Below are positions 4,380 through 58,904 of a stretch of 64,000 nt of DNA, piece after piece. Each line of letters opens with the position of its first letter. Within the stretch, counting starts at the first letter, position 1. The stretch spans positions 1,995,761-2,059,760 of the forward strand of contig RDEW01000003.1 of the NCBI GenBank assembly GCA_011109175.1. Reading direction: 5' to 3'. A model generated the notes under the pieces. It saw only the letters and a list, made by a program, of their open reading frames with translations. It searched no databases and had not been told where the DNA came from. This DNA is from Dicyema japonicum. Lineage: Eukaryota; Animalia; Dicyemida. Made by a program: the position numbers and the translations under genes.

Positions 4380-4452
4380 CGCCCTCGGCCGGATTCGAAC
4401 CAGCAACCTTGCGGTTAACAGCCGCACGCGCTAACCGTTGCGCCACGAAGGC
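4380..4452 (-). tRNA. trnN-GTT: tRNA-Asn (GTT)
   Basis: Reverse complement GCCTTCGTGGCGCAACGGTTAGCGCGTGCGGCT-GTT-AACCGCAAGGTTGCTGGTTCGAATCCGGCCGAGGGCG forms a complete cloverleaf with intact A and B boxes, followed by a T-rich tract. Confidence 0.96.
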
Positions 4453-13060: not shown

Positions 13061-14569
13061 TTTATTCAAGCGAATTATAGGAGTTAATTAAGAGGTTTAT
13101 GCGAGTCCGCCTATGCGGCCTGGACTCTTCCGACGTACCTCATCTCCATTTTCTTTTTATCTTATCGATGGATCCCATCGATCCTCTTCTCCATATTCTG
13201 GTCTAGGCTGTTACACATCCTAATTTCATCTCCAGAACGTTGTAAGTACAAAGCCAGTAAGCCCATCTCCAGTTAGTTCTCACCTTGTAGGTCCTTTCCC
13301 CAGTATGTTCTTCCACAGTGGTCCCAAGCCTTCTTGTAAGGACCGATGATGCGGTTAACAAAGTCCCGTGTAGATCCGGATACGAATGTAGGGATCAATT
13401 GGTGTGGGTACTAGGTCCAACTTGGAAAATATCCGGAGACTTTGACCCTTTGGCTACTGCGTCCCTCAAAAGGTTCCTTAGTTTTTTGTAGAATATGTCA
13501 ATTCGGCCCGTAGTATGTTTCTCCACCTTGTAATATGTTCCTTCGTCTTGTAGAATAGGTTCATTCGACTTGTAATACGTTTCTTCGCCTTAAGGAGAAT
13601 CCCATGCAGTGCAATAGGTTCCTTCGTCTTGTAATATGGCCCATGTAATGTTGATCTTCGCCTTGAGAACATGAAAGTAGCACTAGTGGCACCACCTTTT
13701 TATCTCAGTACTCTTAACCATCTTCGAAGGGCCTGGACTCTTCAAATATTACTCTTTGTTGGTGTTCTGTTAGTTAGTATATAATAAACTTATAGCCAAG
13801 TATTGCCCTCAAAATCCATGTGTTCTGAATAATGTTAGGTGATCTGTTTTTAAGTTAAAAGCAGTTGATAAATAGTTGAGAATTTATGTACCTAATCCAT
13901 ATAATCGATATTAAAATTCATTTTATATGTTTTTTTCTGATTTAATTGAGGCTTGTTACTCGGACATGCCTTACTGTCTCTACTGTTGAATCTTACTCTA
14001 AAGTGGATGGAACATGGAGCTTTAACTAATTTCAAGTCTTTAAATTATGATAACAGCATAATTTGCTCCTAAGAACGATTTATTTTCCCCCGAGTCTGAT
14101 CTATTCTAGACCTTCACCTATTCTGGTCTTTAGTTTGAGATTTATTCCACATATGTTACAATTCCGAGTACGACTACTTTTACCAGTCATAGGATGATAA
14201 AGATACTTGACCAAAAAGTCACCAACTCAACTATCGAATTGCATCCTTTCCAGCATCACATCATCGTAGGAACTATTAGTAGCAATAGAGAAATCCCTAT
14301 TGGATGCGGGCTAGATATTGGGGGTCTCCTAAATTGGATGCACCCCATGACACCTCCAGGGAGATGAAGAAGGCAAAGAGCAGATCGGAATCCTCTGAGC
14401 AATTGGTAACGAGATTGGATTCAAAAGCACAGCTGACTGCGACGATAATAACGCTACATGGTTCTCGCCACCATAGTTGAACAGCCTCACAGGAAATCAT
14501 AAATTCACAAAAACACACGTGGGTTAGTATTAAATAAATATCCAATAAGCATTCAATTGAACATTAAAA

Positions 14570-15422: not shown

Positions 15423-16740
15423 TTATTTAACAAACAATAAAAAAGTTATCTTTTCCATCAAATTATTATATTGTAATTCGATCAACGCCTTCACATTTAC
15501 TAGCCCACCATCATCAACACCATACTTAGCAGACAAAAAAAATTTGATAGTGCCTAGGTGGGTTGCCCGTGTTTTCTCGGTCGTTATTATGGCGTGCTTC
15601 CTAGCAGACACACTTGACCCAGGTATCAGGGTGTCGTGCATTCGCATTAGGATACGCTCACTTAGTTGGACTACTCCACACAGTCCACGGCCGAATTTAT
15701 CACGGAGTAAATATAGTCTCTCCTTATTTGCTGCCAGCACATGGACATGGTTCTCTCTGAGTACTCCACGGATCATAACATCCATCTCATCATACTCTTT
15801 GGGCTCAAACTCCACAACACCTATGTAGTAGTTTAGCAGCGAGACAGCATACTCATTTAATGCTAGGAACAAATTCCTTGCATTTAGAGACGTCTTACAC
15901 AATAACGCTGCTCTTTTACGGATGCCTTCAGTAATTTGTCGCTTTGTCTCAGGCATTATAAGGGACTTTGGAGATTCGGTAACACCCAGATACTTATATC
16001 CTTCGTGTTCCTCTAGGACTCTTACTAACTCGCTACATACTTGCGTGTTAGTCGCAGACTTTGAATAATTCAAATCTAGCATACTCTCAAAGAATTCCCT
16101 GGCACAGACCCCTATGGAGTAGAGCTCCTCGGCTGTTCGAGCATACATCTTCAGGTCATCGATAAAAAGAAGGTGATTTGTACTGAAACAAACCCCTTCA
16201 CAATGAACTGGTATTTGCTCAAACCGGTCATTGAGGCGGCGACTCAATGGCTCCAAACAGAGAACAAAGAGTAGCGGAGACATGCTATCCCCCTGAAGGA
16301 TCCCCCTCTTGAGTTTTACCTCGCCTATCCGGTGCCTATTATAGTTCAGATGAATACTCCACCTATTCATCACAGCCACTACAAAGCTGATGAACCACAC
16401 AGGCATACACAGACTGTGTAGGCACTCGACAAGGTAAGAATGATCAACTGAATCGTAAGCCTTCTTCACATCCACCCACATAGACAAAAGTGAGTTTCCA
16501 TGAGACACAGAAAGGCATTTGATCTATAAAGTTCAATAAATGACGACGAATCCATTGAGGAAGTCTTCTTGCCAGGAAATCCTGCCCAGAAACTTTGAAA
16601 CTATGGTTAAAGCAAATGGGGCAATTTTCATGTTGATGATTTGTTCGCGTGAGCCCATTCCTTATCGCAAATGTGCCAGAACGTGGTCTGAACATCAGAA
16701 AAAGATGCGAAGACTACTGAGGAAGCTCGGGGTCATCTGA
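15423..16740 (-). mobile_element. R4/Dong-like non-LTR RT (361-aa ORF), 3'-truncated
   Basis: WVDVKKAYDSVDH, RGILQGDSMSPLLFVLC, TNHLLFIDDLK, YKYLG, ERLYLLRDKFGRGL. Confidence 0.88.
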
Positions 16741-17427: not shown

Positions 17428-17740
17428 AATTTTTAATTTATTAACCCCGGATACACCGAGAGAGAAGTTAAAGTAACAAACTAATTAAGTGTATCCAGTT
17501 TCCACTTCTACAGAAACAGAGTCCATCCGGAATCAACATAAAAGGTAAGACGTCCATTACATGCAGTTGTGGAAGCCCCTCCAGTGGAGTGGGGGAGAGC
17601 AAATGATCCTTTTTCATGCCGTCCTGGCACTTGGCGTCACCTAGACAGGTGGATCACATGACGCCAATAGGAAGAGAGAGGAGGAACAGACAAGCAAGCA
17701 GAAAACTTCAACCAATTAACCACGCAGCACAAGATGGCGC
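17428..17740 (-). mobile_element. SINE-like family 2 copy A (5' head + pseudoknot + LINE-derived tail)
   Basis: About 300 bp closely similar to 53686-53990. A-box-like TGGTTAATTGG near the 5' end; ends GGGGTT plus an AT tail. Confidence 0.8.
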
Positions 17741-27655: not shown

Positions 27656-30594
27656 ACCCTCGCAAATTGACGAAAATTTGAAATTTTTATAAAAAAATTA
27701 ATATCAACTAAGGCTCATTTTTGCGAACTCAGTAATTTAAAAAATTTTAATGAATTTTTGGATAAATTCAAAAATAGACACGGATTCAGAATGCTCAAGT
27801 TACTGGAGAGTATTTCGGTTTACAATTCTTACAGAAAAATGAATTTTTTTTGGCCAGAAACTTGGGACAATTTTGTATATTGAATAACACTATAAACAAT
27901 ACAAGAACACCTACTCGAAAAGAAGACAAACCTACATCCCCTGACCTCTCCTTATGTTCCCCATCAATGTTTCCCCTCATCAACTGGACTTTAAAATATG
28001 AACTAAGAAGTGATCACAACCCTATTATGATGAAAATAAACACTGAAAAAAATTTATCAGACAGAATTCCACTTTTTTTAATTTTGAAAGCGCAGATTGG
28101 TCCAACTTCTCTAATTACATCGACACCAATATGGAAGTATTTTACACATTGGTATTCTCATCAATTGACCACATGATCAAAACTTTCACGGACATTATAC
28201 TCAAAGCAAGAAAACTATTTATTCCAATGCCATCAAACAAGGAATACCTATTATAATAGGCACACAAAAACACTTATCAGAGAAAGAAATAAATTAAAGA
28301 AGCAAAAGGAATTATCAAATGACGATTTCCAAAAAATGAAATCCTTGAATATACAAATTAAACAAGTTACCCAGTCTAGAATCAAGAAACGATGGACATC
28401 ACTTATTGATTCTCTATCGCCAAATACATCCGAGACGCTGGTATGGAGGAAAATTAAATATTTGAGACGTTGCAATGAAGGTTCTGAGAAAGTCCTCCAC
28501 GGACAGGGATGTAGCAACATCGATCCAAATATTTTAATGAAGCACTATGTCGCAATCAGCCATAAAAATTTCTCGAGGGAACACAGAGTCTACAAGAAGT
28601 TGTATCCATCATATGATTTGATTGTCTTTATTCCACAAGAAGTTCAAACCGCAATCATGGATGCCAAAAACTCCCGTTTCCGAGGTGCTGACAATGTCTC
28701 GATGATGGAACTGAAACACCTTGGTGAAAAAGCAACTAAATTCCTATCATACGTTTATCCTATATCTGTGAACAATAATATGATACCTTCTATATGGAAG
28801 AAATCCATAATTCTGCCAATTCAGAAGCCAAACAAACCTGCAAACGATCCCTCTGATCCCTCTTTTTATCGTCCAATTGCAATACTATGTGCAATGTCCC
28901 GAATTTTAGAAAAATTAATCTTAACACGAATCAAAAATATTGTACCAAATCGAGTATTCCAGCATGGATTCCGCGAAAATCATTCTACTACGACTCACTT
29001 AACAAAATTAACTCAATATATTTCTGATGGATTCTCTTATCCAAAACCACATAAAAGGACCACAATGGCTTCAATAGACTTGAAGAAAGCATTCGACTCC
29101 GTATCCCGGATCCTGCTTATAGAGAAAATTTCTAACACTCTTATAAATCCAAACATTAAAAGATGGCTGTCGAACTTTTTAAGTGGAAGAAGAGGACAAG
29201 TGATGTCAGACAACTGAAAATCTAAATCCTGTACACCAATGACCTTCCCACCAATGACGATCCCGATACATTAATACTCTCATACGCAGATGACATTGTT
29301 CTTTCAACGAGAGACTCTATGAGAAGGCAGGGATAAAACTTCAAAGTTATATTAGTATGTTGGAACATTGGCTCACATCAAGTCGACTGGAAGTTTCTAC
29401 AGGAAAGTCGTTTATAACAATATTCTCTACATATAGAAGATCATTATACTCTCCCAAAAATCAAATTGTTTGGATATGAAATTCCTATGAATAAGTCTCC
29501 AACAATACTAGGATTAAAGTTGGATACTCTCCTGACATTCGGCCAACATGTCAATGACGTTATTACCAAAGTCAGGAGGAGGACCAACATATTGAAAATT
29601 TTGTCCCGATCACCAATCGGGCACAACACCTTCTTACTACAGAAAATTTACAGACAATACATACTGCCAGTAATCGAATATGCATGTCCCTCCTGGAGCT
29701 CGATGATTTCTGAATCGTCGTATCAAATATTAGAAGCCGCACAACAAAAATAATAAGAAAACCGTGGATAACGTATTGAATGTTAAAGAACACCTAAGGT
29801 GGAGAGTGAAGTCATTTCTACAGTGGGCAATGAAAACCGGCTGTCCGCTTTCACTCTCTATATCTGACTATCTAGAAAATGCGGGAAATCTATGGAGAAT
29901 GAGACCGTCCCCGTTTCTACCAATTCTGTTGGATCTTCGAGGACCCCAAACGAGAGCCAGAACCCGGAAAACCGGGATCACTTAGTTTGTAGTTAACTTT
30001 TAACTTTTTCTAATCCGGTGATCTTGGGGTAAAAAAATGAATTTAAAGAATACGGTATTTATTACAAAAATGACTTGGGAAGACGAATCCGAAGAGACAG
30101 TCAGGAACTGTTCCAGGGTTTTAAATAACAAATAACGAAATTCTTGAAATTAATATTAATGATACAGCAATCAGAAGAACAGACATTTTCGATCCTCTCT
30201 TGAGGATTTTGTAAATATTGAATACACGGAAAATGAAACATTTATTGACAATGAAAATTCTTTAGAAGATTCAGAAAATAGTGAACAAGAATTTGAAAAA
30301 AATAAGACCTCTAGACAAAATGGATTTTCCAGATTTAACTGCAATAGAGTGAACTCTTAGCTAATGTTGAGAAGGAACATGAAGTTTCTCTAATTTCTTG
30401 AATAAAGTTTCTCTAGTAAGAAAAAACATTTAAGAATTACATTTTATTTTAATAAAACTTAAATACATTTTTTTGTTCTTTTAAGGCATTTCTAAAATAT
30501 TCTTTGTTCATTGTTTTTCAAAATTATTGAATTTATTTTTTTTCAAGTTGGCCACAAAATTATAAGGAACCAAAAATGCCCAATTTGCGAGGGT
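27656..30594. mobile_element. TIR-bounded DNA element of unassigned superfamily containing a LINE
   Basis: Perfect 14-bp inverted repeat accctcgcaaattg (27656) / caatttgcgagggt (30581-30594). Confidence 0.55.
27800..30037 (+). mobile_element. LINE ORF2 (APE end, RT, 3' UTR), decayed
   Basis: TSPDLSL, SDHNPI, YRPIAIL, FQHGFRENHST, IDLKKAFDSV, SYADD, ILGLKLD. Ends tcttggggtaaaaaaa. Confidence 0.88.
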
Positions 30595-34070: not shown

Positions 34071-35665
34071 TTAGAGTCTTTCAAAGGGGTTGCCAATGGA
34101 AGGAGGGTGAATGTCCTTAAAGAAGTCCCATATTAAAATAGTATCATCATGGGAGCAGGTCATAATTTTAAAATCATCAAACATTAGTCTGAACACTCTC
34201 CCTGTGTGTTCCTTCAGAGTCGACAAACAGTGATCCCGCTTATTCCAATCGGGAGACATCAGAGACTTGTAATCCCAAATTTTGATCCTCCTGCAAATTA
34301 ATCCAACAATATTACGAGTCGTAGGATCCACTCACAATGTAGTTCTGGTTGAATCGAATACACCTCACCAAGTCATCATGGCCTTGCAGAACTCTCAGGC
34401 ATATTCCCCCAACAATGTCCCACAGTCTGATGGTCTTGTCTGAACTCCCACTCGCCACAATATTCCTCCGTTGATGCAAGCAAGCTATCCCCCGTTTGTG
34501 TCCCTCCAAAGTATATTTCGCAGTAAACGTTTTCCTCGACCACACAATGATAGATCGGTCCCCGGAGGCCGTGACAATAAAAGACTCGTCAAAATCCACA
34601 ACATTCACTGCAGCATCGTGTCCGATCAGTTTGCACATCTCAACAAATCCCTCCCCCGGCTTGTGAGTCCACACAATCGCTGTGCTGTCCTTTGAACAAG
34701 TAACCAAGATTTCATGGTCAAATTTCAGGTACAAAACGGCCTGGGAGTGCCCGTCCAACACTTGTGTCTCTTCCCCACTGTTAATATCCCACACACTGCA
34801 GTCTATACAGTCAACTACCGAATGGTGTAGTCAGACGATCCGGTTATGAGCTTATTGTCGTCAAACTGAAGACACAGAACGGACCCAGAGTGCCCAGATA
34901 TCACCTTGCCGACACAGTTGCTCTTCAAATTCCAAAACTACCGTGAGGGAATACATACCTTCACCGTGTTGTCCCGATGACCGGAAACAATCTTGTTCTC
35001 GTCATATTGGAGACAGTAGACCCCGTTGGTCTGGTCAAACTGGAGTTTTCTGACATAACAGCGTCCAGATCGCCAGCGCTTTCTCAGTCTCTGGAAATAA
35101 TAAGCTTCAATCTCACGTAAATCTCCTTTTTAATGAATTGGTACATATTGTGGTAAAAATCCTTATTTTTGATATCCCTAACGTCAGGGATGTCAAAATA
35201 AATCATCCTAAAGTAAGTTGGGGACCAACCATCCACGTTTCTGAACAATTTCCCGCCAAACCGAACGCTGTGTCATTTTCTGTTCAATTATAAACTTCCA
35301 GCAGAGATGAATACGGACGATTGAAAACAAGGACCGGGAGGTGCTCTCAAGGCTAATTATTGATTTTTTGTCGAGGTAGCTGAGAATCCCTTGAACGAGT
35401 TGAGCGTGACCGGCCTCTGAAAGTAATAAAACGAAGGAACCGTGTAAGGCTTGGATGATGTTACAGAAAAGCAAAGGCTGAATGAACTGAAGAATGTCCC
35501 CCATTTGGTCGGTATCTAGTTTGTTTATTAGCTTACGGATTATCAGATTCTGAAAAGTCATACATTCATAGAAACTCTCTCCTCTTCGTTTAATAACTCA
35601 AAGTTTTGAAAAATTTCGTTGATTAGTTCGTAATTGCAGGAGTTTTTGCTAGCCATTTCAGTCAT
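34071..35665 (-). CDS. beta-TrCP / Slimb-like F-box WD40 protein, multiple micro-introns
   Basis: D-domain and F-box (IIQALH|EAGHAQLVQGILSYLD...WKFIIEQK...VWREIVQKRGW). WD repeats GVYCLQYDENKIVSG, GHSGSVLCLQFD, GHDAAVNVVDFD, GHKRGIACL, LVRCIRF, EHTGRVFRLMFDDF...SHDDTILIWDF. Confidence 0.95.
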
Positions 35666-37904: not shown

Positions 37905-38410
37905 CGTTCTGATGAATAATAATGACATGCTACTTTCCTATGCCGATGACATAGTTGTCGCATCTAGGGACGTATATGTCGAACATGCTAAAGAAAGACT
38001 ACAAGGGATATAAATAACATACATGGATAGTTGTGCGAAAATCGATTAAATGCATGTTCCGGAAAGTCAGCAGTCACTCTATTCACTAAGAATAGAAAAA
38101 TAGGAACGCAAACAATTGATGTCACGTTAAATGGAGTACCAATATCACAAAAGAAATCGAAGAAGATACTGGGTATAACTTTTGATACTTTGCTCGGCTT
38201 CTCGGCTCATATGGAATCCATCATAGCAACCTGTGCAAAAAAGATCAATTTTAAAGCCTTCCTTTGGAACTGTTAAAAAATTTATCCGCCAGGTACCGGG
38301 ACTCTCTACAAGCAGTATATCGAGCCAACAATAGGCTATGCATGTGCTGCTGGGGATCTAACTTGGCGGCAAGGAACCTAGTAAAAATTCAAGAGATCCA
38401 GTCAATAGCA
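37905..38410 (+). mobile_element. LINE RT fragment (family of 1-1520 and 27.8 kb)
   Basis: LLSYADDIVVASRD and KKILGITFDTLLGFSAH. Confidence 0.75.
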
Positions 38411-39560
38411 ATAAAGTTACTGGAAAAATATACGGATAAAGAAATTGCGAGATCCACAGCTGATGCGGTCTGGAGTCACAGATGGAGGTGTGCAACATAT
38501 CAAAGATACCGTAACGCCACCAATATTCTGGGAATTGACCTATCAAGAGCTTTTGATACGGTTAACAGGAACAAATTAATGGGGATACTGAGCGGATTTC
38601 TTGATGAGTCGAGTCTAAGGATGACCCGAATTCTACTTTCCAACACTGAGCTCCTCGTGAGAGTCGGAAATACCTATTCAAGAAAATTTGAATCAAACAC
38701 GGGCACTCCACAAGGAGACTCTTTTTCTCCCCTATTATTCACAATTTATTTGGAAGCCGCTATGAGGGAACTTAGACCGTTATACCAAGGAAAGACGGAA
38801 GAAGTGATCTACGCGGACGATGTAGACCTAATTTCTGAAGACAAAGAGGTCCTGGAACACCTATTAGAAAAAGCACCAGATGTACTAGGGAAATGGTTTT
38901 TTACTGTGAACAGAGAGAAAACAGAACTCACAGAGATAAGAAGGATGAGTAACGTCCTAGAAGAGAAGTGGCGACAAGTAAAGAAACTCGGTTCACTTAT
39001 GGGAGATAGCGAAGATATCTTACGTAGGAAAACTCTAGCCAATGCTGCGTTATATAAACTGAAAAATCTATGGCTCAATCAAAGAGGCATCGACACGAAA
39101 ATGAGAATCCTATTATACGACTCATTCATAAAACCCGTACTTTTATATAACGCTGGAACTTGGGCGACCTCATCAGCGGATATGGAAAGACTAGACTCGT
39201 TCCACAGAGGTCAGCTGAGAAAAATAACAGGAACTACTTGGCCTACGAGAATATCGAGGAATGCTTTATATAAGAGATGCAGCACTAGACCTATCAGTTT
39301 AGAAGTACTGGAATCCCGATGGAAGCTCTTCGGACACGTGCTGAGGATGGAATTAACATCCCCACCGAACATATCTATGGAAACATACTATGTTAGTCAA
39401 GAAGGCCGCTATCGTGGAAGACCTAGAACAACACTGCCAATAGTCTTACAAAAAGACCTGGTCAATATTAAAAAAATCTAAAAAATGCCGACGACCTGGA
39501 CAACATGAGAGCCTTGGCTAGGAACAGGGGAGCATGGAAAAGGATGACATCCAACCTTGT
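38400..39560 (+). mobile_element. RTE-like RT 3' half, largely intact frame (bulk of the 405-aa ORF)
   Basis: GIDLSRAFDTV, GTPQGDSFSPLLF, YADD, KKLGS, PVLLYNAGTW, RWKLFGHVLR, RGRPRTT. Confidence 0.92.
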
Positions 39561-40599: not shown

Positions 40600-42055
40600 T
40601 AACTAAAAAGTTTTTTATGAAGACTTTGTCAACCGAGGAAAAACCTTTGGCTTGTCACACATCATCGTTAGTGGGATAAAAAAAAACCATGGTGAAAGAG
40701 AGCGAGGATTACTTTTACATTGAAGATAAAATTAAAATTCTCGAAAAGAAATTGTGTTTATCTGAATCCGCAAGAAATTTCGCCTTGATAATCATCGAAT
40801 TAAATCGAAGATCATTTTACAGAAACCTAACCCCTACGGCAAATAATGTCACTACGTCTATTGATAATGAAAAATGTGCAGACTTTTGAAAAGAATTATG
40901 GAAAAGGAGGAGTCTAAATTCGGAAAGTTTTAATATCGAAAAAAATGACTGGTGATGAAAATGTGTCTGTTAAAGTCTCGAAAAACGTGTTTGAACAAAC
41001 GATTCAATATTGGAAGGCCCTAGGTTGTGATGGGATCTACAATTTCTTCCAGAAATTTTTGCATCGTTGCATGAATTTATATATACTGGAATGTTTAGGA
41101 TTGTAAACGGAGAGTACGTCCCTGGAAACTGGTTTTTTACTGGAATTACGTACTTGATCCAAAATGCGAAGCCCCACAGTCGCCAAGGATCCCCTGTTAC
41201 ATGCATGTCGTCACTCTATAAACTTATGACAAAGTGTATCAATGCCAAGCTAGCGGATTACGTGGAAGCGTTTGGCCTTCTTTCTGAAAACCAGATGGGA
41301 ACAAGGAAGAGATGTCAGGATGCTAAAGAACAGGCATTAGTCAATAAATCAATAAAGTAAATGGAGGTGGACTATATGCTGCATGGATTGATGTCAAAAA
41401 AGCATCTGCTCGGTTGACCACAACTTTGTAATGGAAGTCCTTGAAAAATCCGGAATCCCCGAATGGAGTATTAAAGTTGTGAGATTACTGATTATGCATT
41501 GGAGAGTAAACTAATGTTGAATAATGAAAATATTCGTGATATTCAGACTGAAAGGGGAATTTTGCAGGGGGTGGTCTATCCCCCATGTTATTTGTCTTGT
41601 GCTTGACCCACTTAGCCGTTTATTGACATATAAGTATCCAAAAGTCTCCGTTTTACATGATGATCAGTCTGTCTCGTCATTCTCTCTAACCAAACTAACT
41701 AACTCCTTGATTCTGACTCGTTCCAGGGTTCTAGAACTTGTCCCCGGGGAAAGAATAGTGGATCCTATTGATGCCGGCCAGGCATTGGGCGTCTCCTCAG
41801 TAAGGTGGATCCAATGACGCCATCAAAGGGAGGGAAAATAATTATTGACATACTAGCCACATAGCACCACGTGGCCAAATTAAATGATGGATAATGTTAA
41901 TTTGTACTTCAGTGCTGTGGGTCTGGAAAGAATCTAGAAAAGTCCGCTACAAATATCTTGTTATCAAACGAAGCCAAGTTGTTAGAGGGAATGGATGGAT
42001 ATAAATACCTCGGTGTATTGGAAGGTCCTCCGACAAATTCAAAAGCCAGAAATGT
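40600..42055 (+). mobile_element. Decayed R4/Dong-like RT interrupted by a family 2 short element
   Basis: LGCDGIYNF, PVTCMSSLYKLMT, LSENQMG..K...AKEQALVN, AWIDVKKA, YKYLG. Confidence 0.75.
41684..41876 (-). mobile_element. Family 2-related short element copy C (same head and pseudoknot, different tail)
   Basis: Head gtggtgctatgtggcta matches copy B gtggtgctttgtggcta. Core at 41760-41821; tail ends in (TTAG)n-like repeats. Confidence 0.7.
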
Positions 42056-42290: not shown

Positions 42291-44554
42291 GAATGTAGTT
42301 TCTATCCATGAACACCTCTAGGCTATCCCAAATGCCAAGCCAAAGTCACAGCCAATAGGTGCTTGAGTCTGAACAGATTCGTGAAGCACAGTCAGTAGGG
42401 GCCGGTGATCAAATCATATATTGAAAAAAGGACAAGTAAAATGCCATTAAAAGATATCAAAAATACGAATTTAAAAGAGTTTTGTCCAGAATTTTTTTGA
42501 AACTTATTGAAATGTCATAGAACAACTATTTTAGTAAAAAAAAGTTGTACCACGTTAAGTAAAATGCTCGAAAAGGATTGAAACTTTAATGATAAAAATG
42601 TTAAAAATTATTTCAATAAATTTGATTAAAATTAATTTAAAAACATTAATTATCCGAAATTAATAAGTCATATTTGATTTTTGAAATCTTAGTTATATTT
42701 TTAAGGTCATAATTCAATCATTTTTAGGTCATATTTGTGGTGCCCTACTTACTACAATTTGTCAGTAGGGAAATTTTTTTATGGCAGCTAAATTTCAAAA
42801 ATGTCAGCTAAAATGGCATTTATGGCATCAAAAACAAATTATGACATTTAAAATCCACGTGGGGCCAAAGTTATCGTAGTTTTATGTGGCTACATGAATT
42901 GAAAATTATTTGTTTGATTCTTCTGTTCCTCCCCTTCCCTTTTGGCTTCAGGGAGCTTAAATCGTTCGCGTGCGTCATGTGGTTCACCATCTCTGGTGGC
43001 GTAAGATATAATCTCAAATTATATTCAAAAAGAACCATTAGTCAACAACTATCCAGAGGAGTTCCCCCTGGACGACACTTCCTTCAAGTCCTAACATGCG
43101 AAGACTGCTGAGGGAAGCCGGTATCACCTGAATTTTTTCATTCCTGCTATGACGGTGTTTTTCTGGTTCAATAAATTTAAATTTAAAAGTCAAAAATGGC
43201 ATGGATAACCTCTTAAAACATTTTTAATTAATTTTATATAATTTAACTCATTAATAAAAAATGACTGATTCCTGGTATTTTACTAAAACTCCTTGGACTA
43301 TTGCGATCGATGCAATCACAGTGATTTTTCACTATTCAATAACATGAATACAATTCCAACTATCTGGAAACTGTCCTATATACGCCAATCCTTAAGCCTA
43401 AGGACAATTCCTGCATCATTTCCACCAATCTCTTTACTATGCACCTTATCAAAGTTATTGGAAAATTGATTCTTAACCTTGTAACCTGTCCCTTCCTTTT
43501 TCGTCCTGACAACATAGATTCAGAAGGGGTCATTCAATTTCTACCCACCTAACTTCCCTCAACCAATTTATCATTGAAGGCTTTAACACAAGTAGGCGTC
43601 AAGCTCATCAGAGTTCCCATATCTCAAGGTCTTATATCTTCTTCCTGGAGGGACCTATGATCAAGATGAGCATAGATCAAGACAGCAACCACGTATTCCC
43701 AAAAAGGTCAGGCATGTGGAGGTAAATACTACTTAATTCTTATCTTTTTTGTAACTTCGTAAGAATAAAATTTTTGAGTTCACAAACTAACGAATGAACT
43801 GACGACGTGGCAAAATTCTGGCGTAGACGATTACCAACACCTCCACAAATTGGATGTTTTTCTTGTTCACCAATTTGAATTGATTTCTTATCGAGATCGG
43901 AGGGAGGGATCCATATCATTTGAGCTACCAACTTCATTTTCAATGTATTATTGCTTTATTCTTAGTTCCTTCCCCCATAACTTTGTATTGTAACAGCAAC
44001 AATTATGGAATCCTCTTACCTAACCGAATGGGAAGGAGAAGGTGAAATTACCGAATAACGTCCCCCGAAACAGGTGGCGAATTATAGCCAAGATTATCAT
44101 AATCAGATTTGGGCTGATTTAAACTGCTTACCAAGATTACTGGAGATTGCTGTAAGTAAGCACCCACAAAGTAGCCAAAAAGACCAGCAAATAAGCTCGT
44201 CGTTACAGGTTATGGATTCCTCGGGGATGACAGCCAATGAACCCTAAAGGAGATTTAGAGAGTATAAATAAACTCTAATCCTCGAGCAAAGAGGACGGTG
44301 ACGAAGAGTCCAGGAAACGTAAAGGAAGAATTCAGGCGTAATGACGTTTTTCGCATACTAAGTAGCCTTAACTACAAAAGTGGTGGAGAACAGCAGGTCC
44401 ACTAAACCAAGTTCGCACAATCTCAAGGTGCACCAAACTAAATGGAGAAAGCGTCCTTAGCTAAACTAGCGAATACTCACAAAATAAAGGCTAAACCAGC
44501 ATAAATCCTTATAAAGTGTAATAACTACTCCAGAAGATCAAATCTTCAGATGAA

Positions 44555-53140: not shown

Positions 53141-53680
53141 ATAAATTAAATCTTAAATGAGACACAGAAATACACATACCTGTGTATTTATATACTTTAT
53201 AATAAAATTAAATGAACAAAAATTCCCTCCGATTCCTTTGCGCCTTCAACACTGGATTTCGTGAGTCGTATAGGGCAGCCATGCCCAAAGGGGAGCCACA
53301 GATAATTAGATTTAATAAAAAATTGGTGAAAATTAGTATATTATTTTATTTTTGAGTTCATGTTCGAAGTCTTCTCATCTCCCGTTTCTGAACTTTCGTT
53401 TAATAATAAAATTGTTTATATTTTTAATTAATTTTTTTTCCACGCTAGTATTCTTATATGATTTACTTTGTTGTTAACTTTTTATCACATAATCTTTGCT
53501 TTTTGGAAGAAAGATTACAAGCGATACAAAGGGGTGTCACTTGTAATGAAATTGAACCACATTTGGCTTCAGTAAAGCAGTATTAATTACAAAAATGAGG
53601 AATAGACTCGATGTTGTCAATAGAGGTGATCTACGCTTATCATGGTCAAATATTGAGCCGGATGTAACTAAGTTGGTAAT

Positions 53681-54032
53681 AATAATAACCCCGAATACAC
53701 CGAGAAAGAAGTTAAAGTAAACAACTGATTAAGTGTAACCAGTTTCCACTTGTACAGAAACAGAGTCCACCCTGAATCAACATAAAGGGTAAAAGGCGTC
53801 CATTCTTGCAGTTGTGTAAACCCCTCCAGTGGAGTGGGGGAGAGCAAGTGATCCTTCTTCGTGCCGGTATGGTATTGGGTGCCACCTAGACAGGTGGATC
53901 ACATGACGCAACTCTAATAGGACGAGAGATGAGGAACAGACGAACAACAAGAAACTTCAACCAATTAGCCACAAAGCACCACATGACGCGACGCGGCTTT
54001 TAATTTCGAATAAATCATTAATAAATGTCTAC
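53681..54032 (-). mobile_element. SINE-like family 2 copy B with 11-bp TSD
   Basis: TSD aagttggtaat at 53670-53680 and 54033-54043. A-box-like TGGCTAATTGG; ends GGGGTT(ATT)n. Confidence 0.88.
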
Positions 54033-56066: not shown

Positions 56067-56284
56067 TATTTAAAAAAATGTAGAAAAGGGAGCCATGGAT
56101 TATATGATCGTGAGCATGCTTGGTCTAGGGCAGGGGTCGGTAACCTTATAAGTCAAAGAGCCAATATTTGGTTTTCTGGTAATTAAAAAAATTAAAGAGT
56201 CACTTTTTAAAATAATAAAAATTTTCATAGTCCAGATCGTCGCCAGGGAGCGAAATCTTCACCTGGTAAATGAGGTGCCTTTTG

Positions 56285-56388
56285 AATATTGGCCAGACAT
56301 CGGCGTCTCCCGAATGAGGTGGATCCAATGACGCCACAAGAGGGAAGGAAGAGAAATCTTCAATCAAATAGTCACGTGACATCTAGCC
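56285..56388 (-). mobile_element. Family 2-related short element copy D (head + pseudoknot)
   Basis: Head gtgactatttgattgaagatttct resembles gtggctaattggttgaagtttct. Core GGCGTCATTGGATCCACCTCATTCGGGAGACGCC. Confidence 0.65.
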
Positions 56389-57589: not shown

Positions 57590-58904
57590 CCCTTGCAGTC
57601 GAGAAAATGGTCTTTTGTAGACCCAATTTTATAAAAGTATGATCAGAGATTTTTATGATGACCTTGTGAGATCAACTCGTACGCTACCTCGGAATATTGA
57701 TTGGGAGTCACTTATTTTCTGCAGAAACTTGTTAAGTAGTTTATTCATTCCGAGAATGTTGATCGATCTGTTGCATTTTCTTGTGGATATTTCCGGGGTA
57801 CCGCGATATTCTTTTTTGAAGATAGCTACAGTCAAGCCTGTTTGCTACGGAAGGGGCGAGGTTTGTTCCACATGAAGTTGCAAGGATGACTTTTTTCAAG
57901 GACACCTGAATTATTAACCCCAGACATACAATCTTTGGTAAGTCCTGTTTACTTGTGCCGACCAAATCCATCCTCAATAGTCCATTAATGCTTCCGAAGA
58001 GAGGTGGAGACGTCTTCTTTTTTCACTACACGTGCTACCCTCGAGGACATTACTTCATTTATAAGTGGAATATTTTTTCATAATGGTAATCTTCACAAGT
58101 GGAGTTGGGAGAAAATAGTAAGATCCCTTTCAACAACTGTATCGTGCCGTCACCTCGTGGATGAGATCTGTTTGACGAGAATCAACCATCGCTGAAAAGT
58201 CCATCTTTCAGATTCGAAACCACGACTGTCAGAACCGATTTCAAGCGACGAATAAATAAATTGGACGTTGTGATTGATTATAATTTTAAATATTGAAATA
58301 AACGGATCAATAATCCTGGTGTGCTAAAGTCTCTGACAATCTTCCCCTTTCTTGAGGTTAATGAAACACTCCAGACAACACAGAAGTGTGAGGAGAGGCG
58401 CATGCAATTAGACGATAACTTTAATCCTCTATCTTGTGTTCCTATGGTTATAATAATAGAAGATATCGACGCAGAACCCCTGCCAACAAAGCGATAAAAT
58501 ACTAGTCGCGAAGAATGAAGCGCGATACCTCAGTTCCCACGCATGACCTAATCTTCAGTGGTCGGCGATAATATGAAGGTGGTGAAACATCAGAAACTTA
58601 AGACTAAGAACCGCTGAAGAAGTTGTAGGCGACAGTTGATTTGGAAAAGGGCAATATAGAAAATTATATCTGCCATCAAATTTTTGGAAATATAACAGAA
58701 CATTTCCCGGTAAAGTAACACACACCCTTTCCAAGTATCACATCCTACCAAGTACCAATCACTGTGTCGCCAGTCTCTCCTAGGTTAGGTGGATCACCGA
58801 CACCTACCGGTGTTTTAGACAAGTTAATCAACTCTAAAGAATAAAATGGCTAATAACTGAGAAATTATTTTATAAGAGAAAAAGACAAAGCAAATAATTA
58901 AAAA

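Follow-up and report, generated by a model that had tools for sequence, protein, structure and literature searches.

The best-known structured RNAs of non-LTR retrotransposons are the HDV-like ribozymes, which are thought to cut the element from co-transcripts and to help translation start, and for which a C-to-U change in J4/2 is the classical inactivating change. In the 7SL-derived SINEs another structured 5' module, the Alu domain, engages cellular or LINE machinery.

It is already known that HDV-like ribozymes occur in LINEs as well as in the short derivatives NARTc and SIDER (PMC4035085, PMC3774820). They cut just upstream of P1, and the genomic copies of R2 and L1Tc begin at this position (PMC4035085, PMC3774820). 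The L3 of HDV-like ribozymes has about 7-8 nt with a conserved U..G reverse wobble, P1.1, P3, and L3 make up the conserved core of the R2 ribozymes, and in Nasonia R2, where the G of L3 is lost, cleavage is abolished (PMC3774820). Modules of a different kind are found in the CORE, V, Deu, Ceph, and Meta SINEs, which are superfamilies with a highly conserved central domain (PMC4824008, PMC3531059).

What is new in the present case is an HDV-shaped, covarying knot whose core is reduced, residing inside abundant non-coding SINEs whose RNAs appear to have been copied uncut. The sequence under study is a stretch of 64,000 nucleotides from Dicyema japonicum (the window), together with the genome assembly that contains it (67.5 Mb in 377 contigs) and further genome sequence from 51 loci. 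Table 1 gives the positions of the features. The core at 17.6 kb has 62 bases and is read on the minus strand, which is the sense of the element; the sequence and helices that the initial annotation gave for it agree with the window letter for letter.

Table 1. Positions of the pseudoknot cores, their helices, and other features in the window
Feature	Position	Strand	Basis
Family A (subfamily A1-T) pseudoknot core	17604..17665	-	sequence; CM match 88 bits, E about 1e-26
P1 of this core, GGCGTCA/TGACGCC	17659-17665 with 17633-17639	-	sequence
P2 of this core, TGATCC/GGATCA	17651-17656 with 17604-17609	-	sequence
P3 of this core, CCT/AGG	17647-17649 with 17640-17642	-	sequence
P4 of this core, GTGCC/GGCAT	17626-17630 with 17616-17620	-	sequence
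L3 of this core	17643-17646	-	sequence
J4/2 of this core	17610-17615	-	sequence
Whole family A SINE-like copy, 313 bp, head slightly 5'-truncated	17428..17740	-	alignment of genomic copies
Second, older family A core, P1 and P4 partly decayed (element ~53665-53998)	53846..53913	-	CM E about 1e-20
Family B core (element ~41680-41885, roughly 200 bp)	41756..41824	-	CM E about 1e-21
Decayed family B copy, full length	56271..56338	-	CM E about 1e-13
Old worn B-like core	14289..14357	-	CM E = 3.5e-12 and 1.9e-8
Family D core (CM span 42969-43040; element ~42855-43185)	42972..43037	+	CM matches, sequence
P4 of the family D core	43005-43012 with 43018-43025	+	
ATG in J1/2 of the family D core	42977-42979	+	
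RVT_1 frame, LINE fragment	15426-16523	-	Pfam E = 6e-17
RVT_1 frame, LINE fragment	28177-29214	+	Pfam E = 3e-12
RVT_1 frame, LINE fragment	38255-39478	+	Pfam E = 1.5e-20
tRNA-Asn (GTT) gene	4380-4452	-	sole match of the window to Rfam at gathering score

The core at 17.6 kb is part of a repeat, family A, whose unit has a length of about 330 bp in this orientation when 16-30 genomic copies are aligned. The unit begins with a head containing CACGTGG- and ATGTGG-type motifs, and continues with a CT-rich spacer, the core, and a body, before it ends with TTAATAA and an A-rich tail. The copy at 17.6 kb is A-tailed with target-site duplications on both flanks, and many young copies of subfamily A1 have target-site duplications of 8-21 nt around the entire unit, head included. 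Similarity to tRNA, 7SL, or 5S RNA is absent from copies of family A, and of families B and D described below, in Rfam comparisons at E <= 10. Since it has an A-rich tail, target-site duplications, and no small-RNA similarity, family A is by all appearances a SINE-like, LINE-dependent repeat. Runs of four T occur inside its unit, and no partner LINE sharing its 3' tail is present in the 357 kb of sequence examined. Five of the 30 closest A copies (L012, L019, L021, L023, and L026, at about position 1700 of each locus) start at ATGTGGTG, about 13 nt further into the unit, and their target-site duplications directly abut this start; the head may thus have a second start site, or a point at which 5' truncation is favoured.

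At first look, there were at least 1235 genome candidates for the 91 bases around the 17.6-kb core, and at least 790 for family B. Exact matches to three core variants number 638 (A), 197 (B), and 181 (D) in the genome, compared with 0 for the reversed-pattern controls. When 200 kb of genome were sampled without regard to the repeat (contig C1; several stretches of N of 1-7.5 kb, in the loci L031, L034-L036, and L037 at 100-200 kb, are included in this length), they contained nine cores, from which a number of about 3000 core copies per genome is suggested. The module would, by these counts, be carried by families A, B, and D and by smaller SINE-like families in a few thousand copies in 67.5 Mb. 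The units are about 200-330 bp long across the families, and the open frames downstream of the cores reach at most about 70 aa, with the exception of one frame of 153-166 aa in locus L048.

The initial annotation had placed further copies of the core at four positions in the window. Those at 41760-41821, 53849-53909, and 56.3 kb are true relatives, recovered by a profile and by two covariance models (CM) at E values of 1e-13 to 1e-21, but the extent given for the 56.3-kb copy (56285-56335) must be revised, because this copy is full length and decayed rather than truncated: it has mutations in the 3' arm of P4 and in P2', and it lacks one base behind P1'. The 41.7-kb core has GGATCC/GGATCC as P2, TACTG as L3, and CAATA as J4/2. 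The fourth position, 58741..58804 (-), drops out as a family member, since this locus is a singleton in the genome where about 20 nt alone (GATCCACCT..AGG) resemble the core, and models built without it give E = 0.29 and 0.34 over these about 20 nt. A weak CM match at 35149-35208 proved to be unrelated sequence. Family D was absent from the initial list. It is a 330-bp repeat with a head and a spacer of the same kind as in A and B, and its core in the window has P1 GCGTCA/TGGCGT with a G.U first pair, P2 TGGTTC/GAACCA, P3 CCA/TGG, and J4/2 CAAAAA. The family D element in the window, on the plus strand, lies 1 kb from the 41.7-kb copy of family B. Its 55 genome relatives fall into three subfamilies, D1-D3.

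Outside the window, four copies of a larger local repeat are found on contig C112, 150-180 kb (L046:8987-9047, L047:3164-3212, L047:7319-7379, and L048:1476-1541). In this repeat an A-like core without P3 starts about 2 nt before P1, and in three of the four copies the 3' tail of family A follows the core immediately. The unrelated flank upstream is the same in all of them, which means that the four copies represent one locally amplified event. Directly 3' of P2' (e.g., at 17575-17600 on the minus strand and 43050-43075 on the plus strand) a further hairpin is possible in each family, although the sequences differ: CTCC..GGAG within a C-run/G-run in A, TCCCCGGGGA in B, and TCCAG..CTGGA in D. 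This hairpin may be a candidate fifth conserved helix.

To see how the fold varies, consider the three families A (17.6 and 53.8 kb), B (41.7 and 56.3 kb), and D (42972-43037), which have the helix order P1, P2, P3, P3', P1', P4, P4', P2' in common. The subfamily sequences are taken from genome-wide pattern matches, where each pattern has 0-17 matches to its reversed-pattern control, and the genome-wide subfamily variation is read by eye from the pattern matches listed. Family A has TGATCC/GGATCA as P2, family B has GGATCC/GGATCC, and family D has TGGTTC/GAACCA, where D2 shows GGACCA and a wobble; the first P2 pair thereby goes from T-A in A to G-C in B. The compensatory change in P2 proposed in the initial annotation is, in other words, seen between A and B and extended by D. 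The search pattern for family D placed no constraint on the five bases that follow the first G of P2', and yet the majority of its 55 matches have AACCA or GACCA there. The third pair of P3 is T-A in A and B, while it is G.T in D1, A-T in D2, and T-A in D3. P4 is GTGCC/GGCAC or GGCAT in A and ATGCC/GGCAT in B (for which GTGCC/GGCAC is also listed), and in family D it is GATATAG/CTATATC (D1), GATATAAT/ATTATATC (D2), or GATACA/TGTATC (D3).

The main count of pairs uses a model alignment that is not fitted to P2. In this alignment 84.8% of the cells pair, compared with 32-55% when the partners are slid. There are 33 cells with changes on both sides, compared with 16.3 +/- 3.8 in shuffles (0 of 500 reach 33), and 11 pairs with a double change, compared with 6.7 in shuffles (4/500). 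Double changes occur in four of the six pairs of P2 and in four of the five pairs of P4, and P3 also changes on both sides of pairs. A second alignment, fitted to P2, P3, and P4, has 86.4% of the cells paired and gives the same picture; over both alignments the slid partners reach 31-55%.

One may ask if the helices could be chance inverted repeats in a recently amplified repeat, with no selected structure. Since a small number of young subfamilies account for most copies, the number of independent events is modest, and the shuffle controls ignore relatedness. The slid-partner controls, however, keep relatedness and still drop to 32-55% paired, and three deeply diverged families with their subfamilies give at least seven independent double-side changes, while the sole fixed disruption is the terminal pair in family B. 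Chance is accordingly an extremely improbable account of the helices.

P1 behaves differently from P2 and P4, in that its changes are almost all one-sided (U-A to U.G and G-C to G.U) and always G.U-compatible. P1 is supported by conservation and wobble-compatible change, and not by covariation. The covariation in P1 that had been put forward earlier, with GTGTCG/CGACAC as the variant helix, rests on the locus at 58.7 kb, and since this locus is not a demonstrable member of the family, the compensatory evidence for P1 falls with it. The conservation of P1 could also be explained by a signal at the DNA level, and one may extend this argument to the whole core by assuming that internal promoter or factor-binding sites (half-CRE-like TGACGC arms and an ATG/Inr-like start region) are conserved and that the RNA fold is incidental. 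The P1 arms are indeed conserved in sequence in all families without any solid double change, D1 and related elements start 6-9 nt upstream of P1, which fits the position of an internal promoter, and Pr77 of L1Tc is promoter and ribozyme at the same time (PMC4035085). The double changes in P2, P3, and P4, on the other hand, keep pairing but alter sequence, to the point that P4 is wholly replaced between A/B and D, and the G.U pairs fit a single strand. A role at the DNA level may exist in addition, yet it leaves the covariation unexplained, and we find it quite unlikely that DNA signals account for the core.

The strand follows from the wobble pairs. About 10% of the cells are G.U pairs, which become A.C mismatches on the opposite strand, and because these pairs would mismatch on the other strand, the structure belongs to the sense strand of the element. 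The nested folding scores, with z = -2.3 and -1.8 for sense compared with -0.4 and -0.9 for antisense, agree weakly with this assignment. When only nested folding is allowed, either P1 or P2 is chosen, and the result, weakly better than for shuffles, decides nothing on the knot. The module is a pseudoknot on the sense strand, with helices that covary between families. The proposal of the initial annotation that non-autonomous families carry a pseudoknot with the HDV helix order is supported by the compensatory changes, and in families A and B about 90 nt separate the core from the 5' end.

J1/2 reads ATG in families A and D and ATT in family B. In A the ATG is immediately followed by TGA, while the frame from the ATG of J1/2 is open through the core in D1, D2, and D3, with mostly conservative changes. 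The open frame in D is what would be expected if the conservation were left over from protein coding, in the sense that the core would be the start of a LINE frame inherited by the SINE copies. In P4 of family D, however, there are paired synonymous changes, Tyr TAT/TAC with Leu TTA/TTG, and paired changes that are synonymous on both sides are the signature of an RNA structure over a coding sequence, rather than of a peptide. Furthermore, family A, with ATG-TGA, and family B, which has lost the ATG, both keep the helices by compensatory change, from which it follows that the fold is maintained where coding is lost. We therefore regard inherited coding as a very unlikely reason for the conservation of the core. 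The frames of A, B, and D have no NPGP motif of 2A type. No knot is found upstream of the three RT fragments in the window or of three LINE fragments in 200 kb of contig C1, and no LINE 5' end with the core occurs in the 357 kb examined. A B-type copy at L048:9283-9783 (-) has a 166-aa frame that runs from the ATG of the head through spacer and knot; this frame was rejected as a coding candidate, having no Pfam match and having genome matches mainly to residues 1-85, which are the SINE part.

In its dimensions the module is HDV-like, with 62-66 nt, a P1 of 6-7 bp, a J1/2 of 2 nt, a P2 of 6 bp, a P3 of 3 bp, a P4 of 5-8 bp, and an A-rich J4/2. The helix order is the same as in the HDV-like ribozymes of R2, RTE, L1Tc, NARTc, RIME, and SIDER, and the helix lengths are similar. 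The retroelement ribozymes and the present module also have in common that they occur in LINE-dependent elements, non-autonomous ones included, that J4/2 is A-rich and often starts with C, and that there is a start codon near the fold. Even the internal position has a parallel in SIDER2, where a second copy of the ribozyme is likewise internal (PMC4035085, PMC3774820).

The likeness does not extend to the catalytic centre. L3, which the initial annotation had called non-canonical, has 4-5 nt in every subfamily (GTCT, GTCTC, TACTG, TACTC, TTTC, TCTC, or TGTC). For P1.1, which would be two pairs between L3 and J1/4, several registers were compared by eye in the subfamily sequences, and there is no consistent register or covariation among these. 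J1/4 is CA or CG, and only B1 (TG/CA) and single decayed copies have an L3 complementary to it. The exchange between TG/CA and TC/GA that had been suggested for P1.1 comes from single decayed copies and is absent at the level of subfamilies; TC/GA stems from the single base missing from the decayed copy at 56.3 kb. Families A and B open P1 with a G-C pair, D1 and D3 with G.U, and D2 is mixed.

The remaining feature is the candidate catalytic C. There is a C at the border between P4 and J4/2 in most subfamilies, and this C is unpaired and starts J4/2 in B (CAAGA, TCAAAA), D2, and D3 (CAAAAA), while it is base-paired as the last pair of P4 in A1-C, A2, and D1; A and D1 have CGAA or CUAA at this border. 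The 17.6-kb core itself belongs to A1-T, in which a U stands in place of the candidate catalytic C. The U and C variants account for 16 and 14, respectively, of the 30 closest A copies. Since they are linked to two other diagnostic sites (p = 8e-7 and 1.5e-4), they are true subfamilies, and from this follows further that a source gene with the inactivating U has been as prolific as one with C, which would make the candidate catalytic C dispensable.

The HDV-type models of Rfam (HDV ribozyme, CPEB3, and drz) have no match at gathering score on the window, such models being insensitive to divergent members, and at E <= 10 the copies of A, B, and D likewise have no HDV-type match and only chance matches of snoRNA type. 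In short, the catalytic centre of the HDV-like ribozymes would seem, from the subfamily sequences, not to be kept in this module: L3 has 4-5 nt, P1.1 is missing, and the C is dispensable.

If the RNAs were cut at the site predicted from the HDV-like fold, just 5' of P1, before they are copied, the copies should begin there, as they do in R2 and L1Tc. The sequence upstream of P1 was sampled with genome-wide patterns in which the 13 bases upstream of P1 were left free. For the 638 genome matches to A cores, about 92 of the 100 listed keep TTCCTA(T/A)TAGAGTG directly before P1; for the 197 matches to B cores, about 93 of the 100 listed keep a CT-rich spacer ending with GATG; and for the 181 matches to D-type cores, about 85-90 of the 100 listed keep a short leader ending with CGT or CGTG. 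In D1 and two further small families there is only unrelated AT-rich flank beyond a leader of 6-9 nt, which puts the knot at the very 5' end of these elements, and the conserved leader of the D1 type would itself be removed by the predicted cut. Since the upstream bases are conserved and the target-site duplications enclose whole A units, the templates of essentially all copies were, to judge from the genomic copies, uncut at the predicted site.

The small families of this kind, of which there are at least two besides D1, have the leaders TTCTCGTG and GAAACGTG. About 10 of the 100 listed D-type rows are without recognisable leader. The public runs that hold the locus (2019) are DNA contigs, none of them recorded as RNA, and they show repeat-depth peaks and family variants but no 5' ends.

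Slow or regulated cleavage of other RNA molecules could be compatible with uncut templates, and some members could still cut because they have CAA right after P4 (B, D2, and D3) or a G.U first pair of P1 (D1 and D3). One may therefore consider the possibility that the module, in at least some subfamilies, is a working, divergent HDV-like ribozyme that cuts 5' of the first G of P1 and frees the body from the head or an upstream co-transcript. HDV helix order and dimensions with covariation, the C followed by AA that opens J4/2 in B, D2, and D3, the CGAA or CUAA that A and D1 have at the border of P4, and the G.U pair in D1 and D3 would all fit, as would the occurrence of such ribozymes in LINEs, NARTc, and SIDER (PMC4035085, PMC3774820). 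An L3 of 4-5 nt rather than about 7-8 nt, an inconsistent P1.1, the lack of HDV-type Rfam matches at E <= 10 among the copies, a U subfamily as prolific as the C subfamily, and copies that almost never start at the predicted cut all speak against cleavage, and we judge it unlikely. The first interpretation offered for this sequence, a self-cleaving ribozyme, thus gives way to the fallback that accompanied it, a non-catalytic pseudoknot, which is the better reading of a fold whose catalytic core is not kept and whose RNAs were uncut when copied.

We consider the most probable explanation, with a probability of roughly 0.55, to be that the module is a non-cleaving structural member of the HDV-ribozyme lineage, kept because the folded RNA is needed in cis. 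It would be the descendant of an HDV-like ribozyme and translation-start module of non-LTR retrotransposons, from which cleavage has been lost. The ATG of J1/2 would be a remnant of this origin, still opening a conserved frame in D, followed by TGA in A, and lost in B. Selection on the source genes would maintain the fold, given that a folded RNA is required in cis for propagation, and its likeliest role would be that of a recognition or ribonucleoprotein-assembly signal, by which the element mimics the 5' leader of its partner LINE. What the sequences show is the fold, its covariation, its strand, and the uncut state of the RNAs that were copied, while both the descent from a ribozyme-type LINE leader and the role in recognition are what we infer.

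A wider claim is either that an HDV-type knot, having lost its catalytic loop, is selected both in coding leaders and in SINEs as a recognition or translation-start signal, or that the module is a new catalytic HDV variant with an L3 of 4-5 nt and no P1.1; this we put forward as a doubtful, tentative proposal.

When the non-cleaving structural module is set beside the HDV-like ribozymes, the differences are that its L3 has 4-5 nt, that P1.1 is missing, that P1 starts with G-C in families A and B, and that the prolific A1-T has U; furthermore, its genomic copies retain conserved sequence in front of the expected cut, which in families A and B includes a head of about 90 nt. The Alu domain is likewise a folded RNA at or near the 5' end, kept by selection on source genes and unneeded for coding, but the element described here is without similarity to 7SL, tRNA, or 5S RNA, and has T4 runs inside its unit. 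With the CORE, V, Deu, Ceph, and Meta SINEs it shares that one module is conserved across families that are otherwise different, with a presumed role in propagation. In contrast to those central domains, to which we liken it by description, what defines the present module is a covarying pseudoknot rather than sequence identity; its sequence differs from one family to the next, and it is seen in one genome.

Thousands of non-coding elements that parasitize LINEs have here preserved the HDV architecture through compensatory evolution, without the catalytic loop and in RNAs that were uncut when copied. If the reading of a non-cleaving structural module is true, the retrotransposition machinery needs the fold itself and not cleavage, and the structural role of the HDV-type class of RNAs would be separated from its catalytic role. 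Families A and B and subfamilies D1-D3 would make up a natural series of covarying variants, with which the roles of fold and cleavage could be tested against each other.
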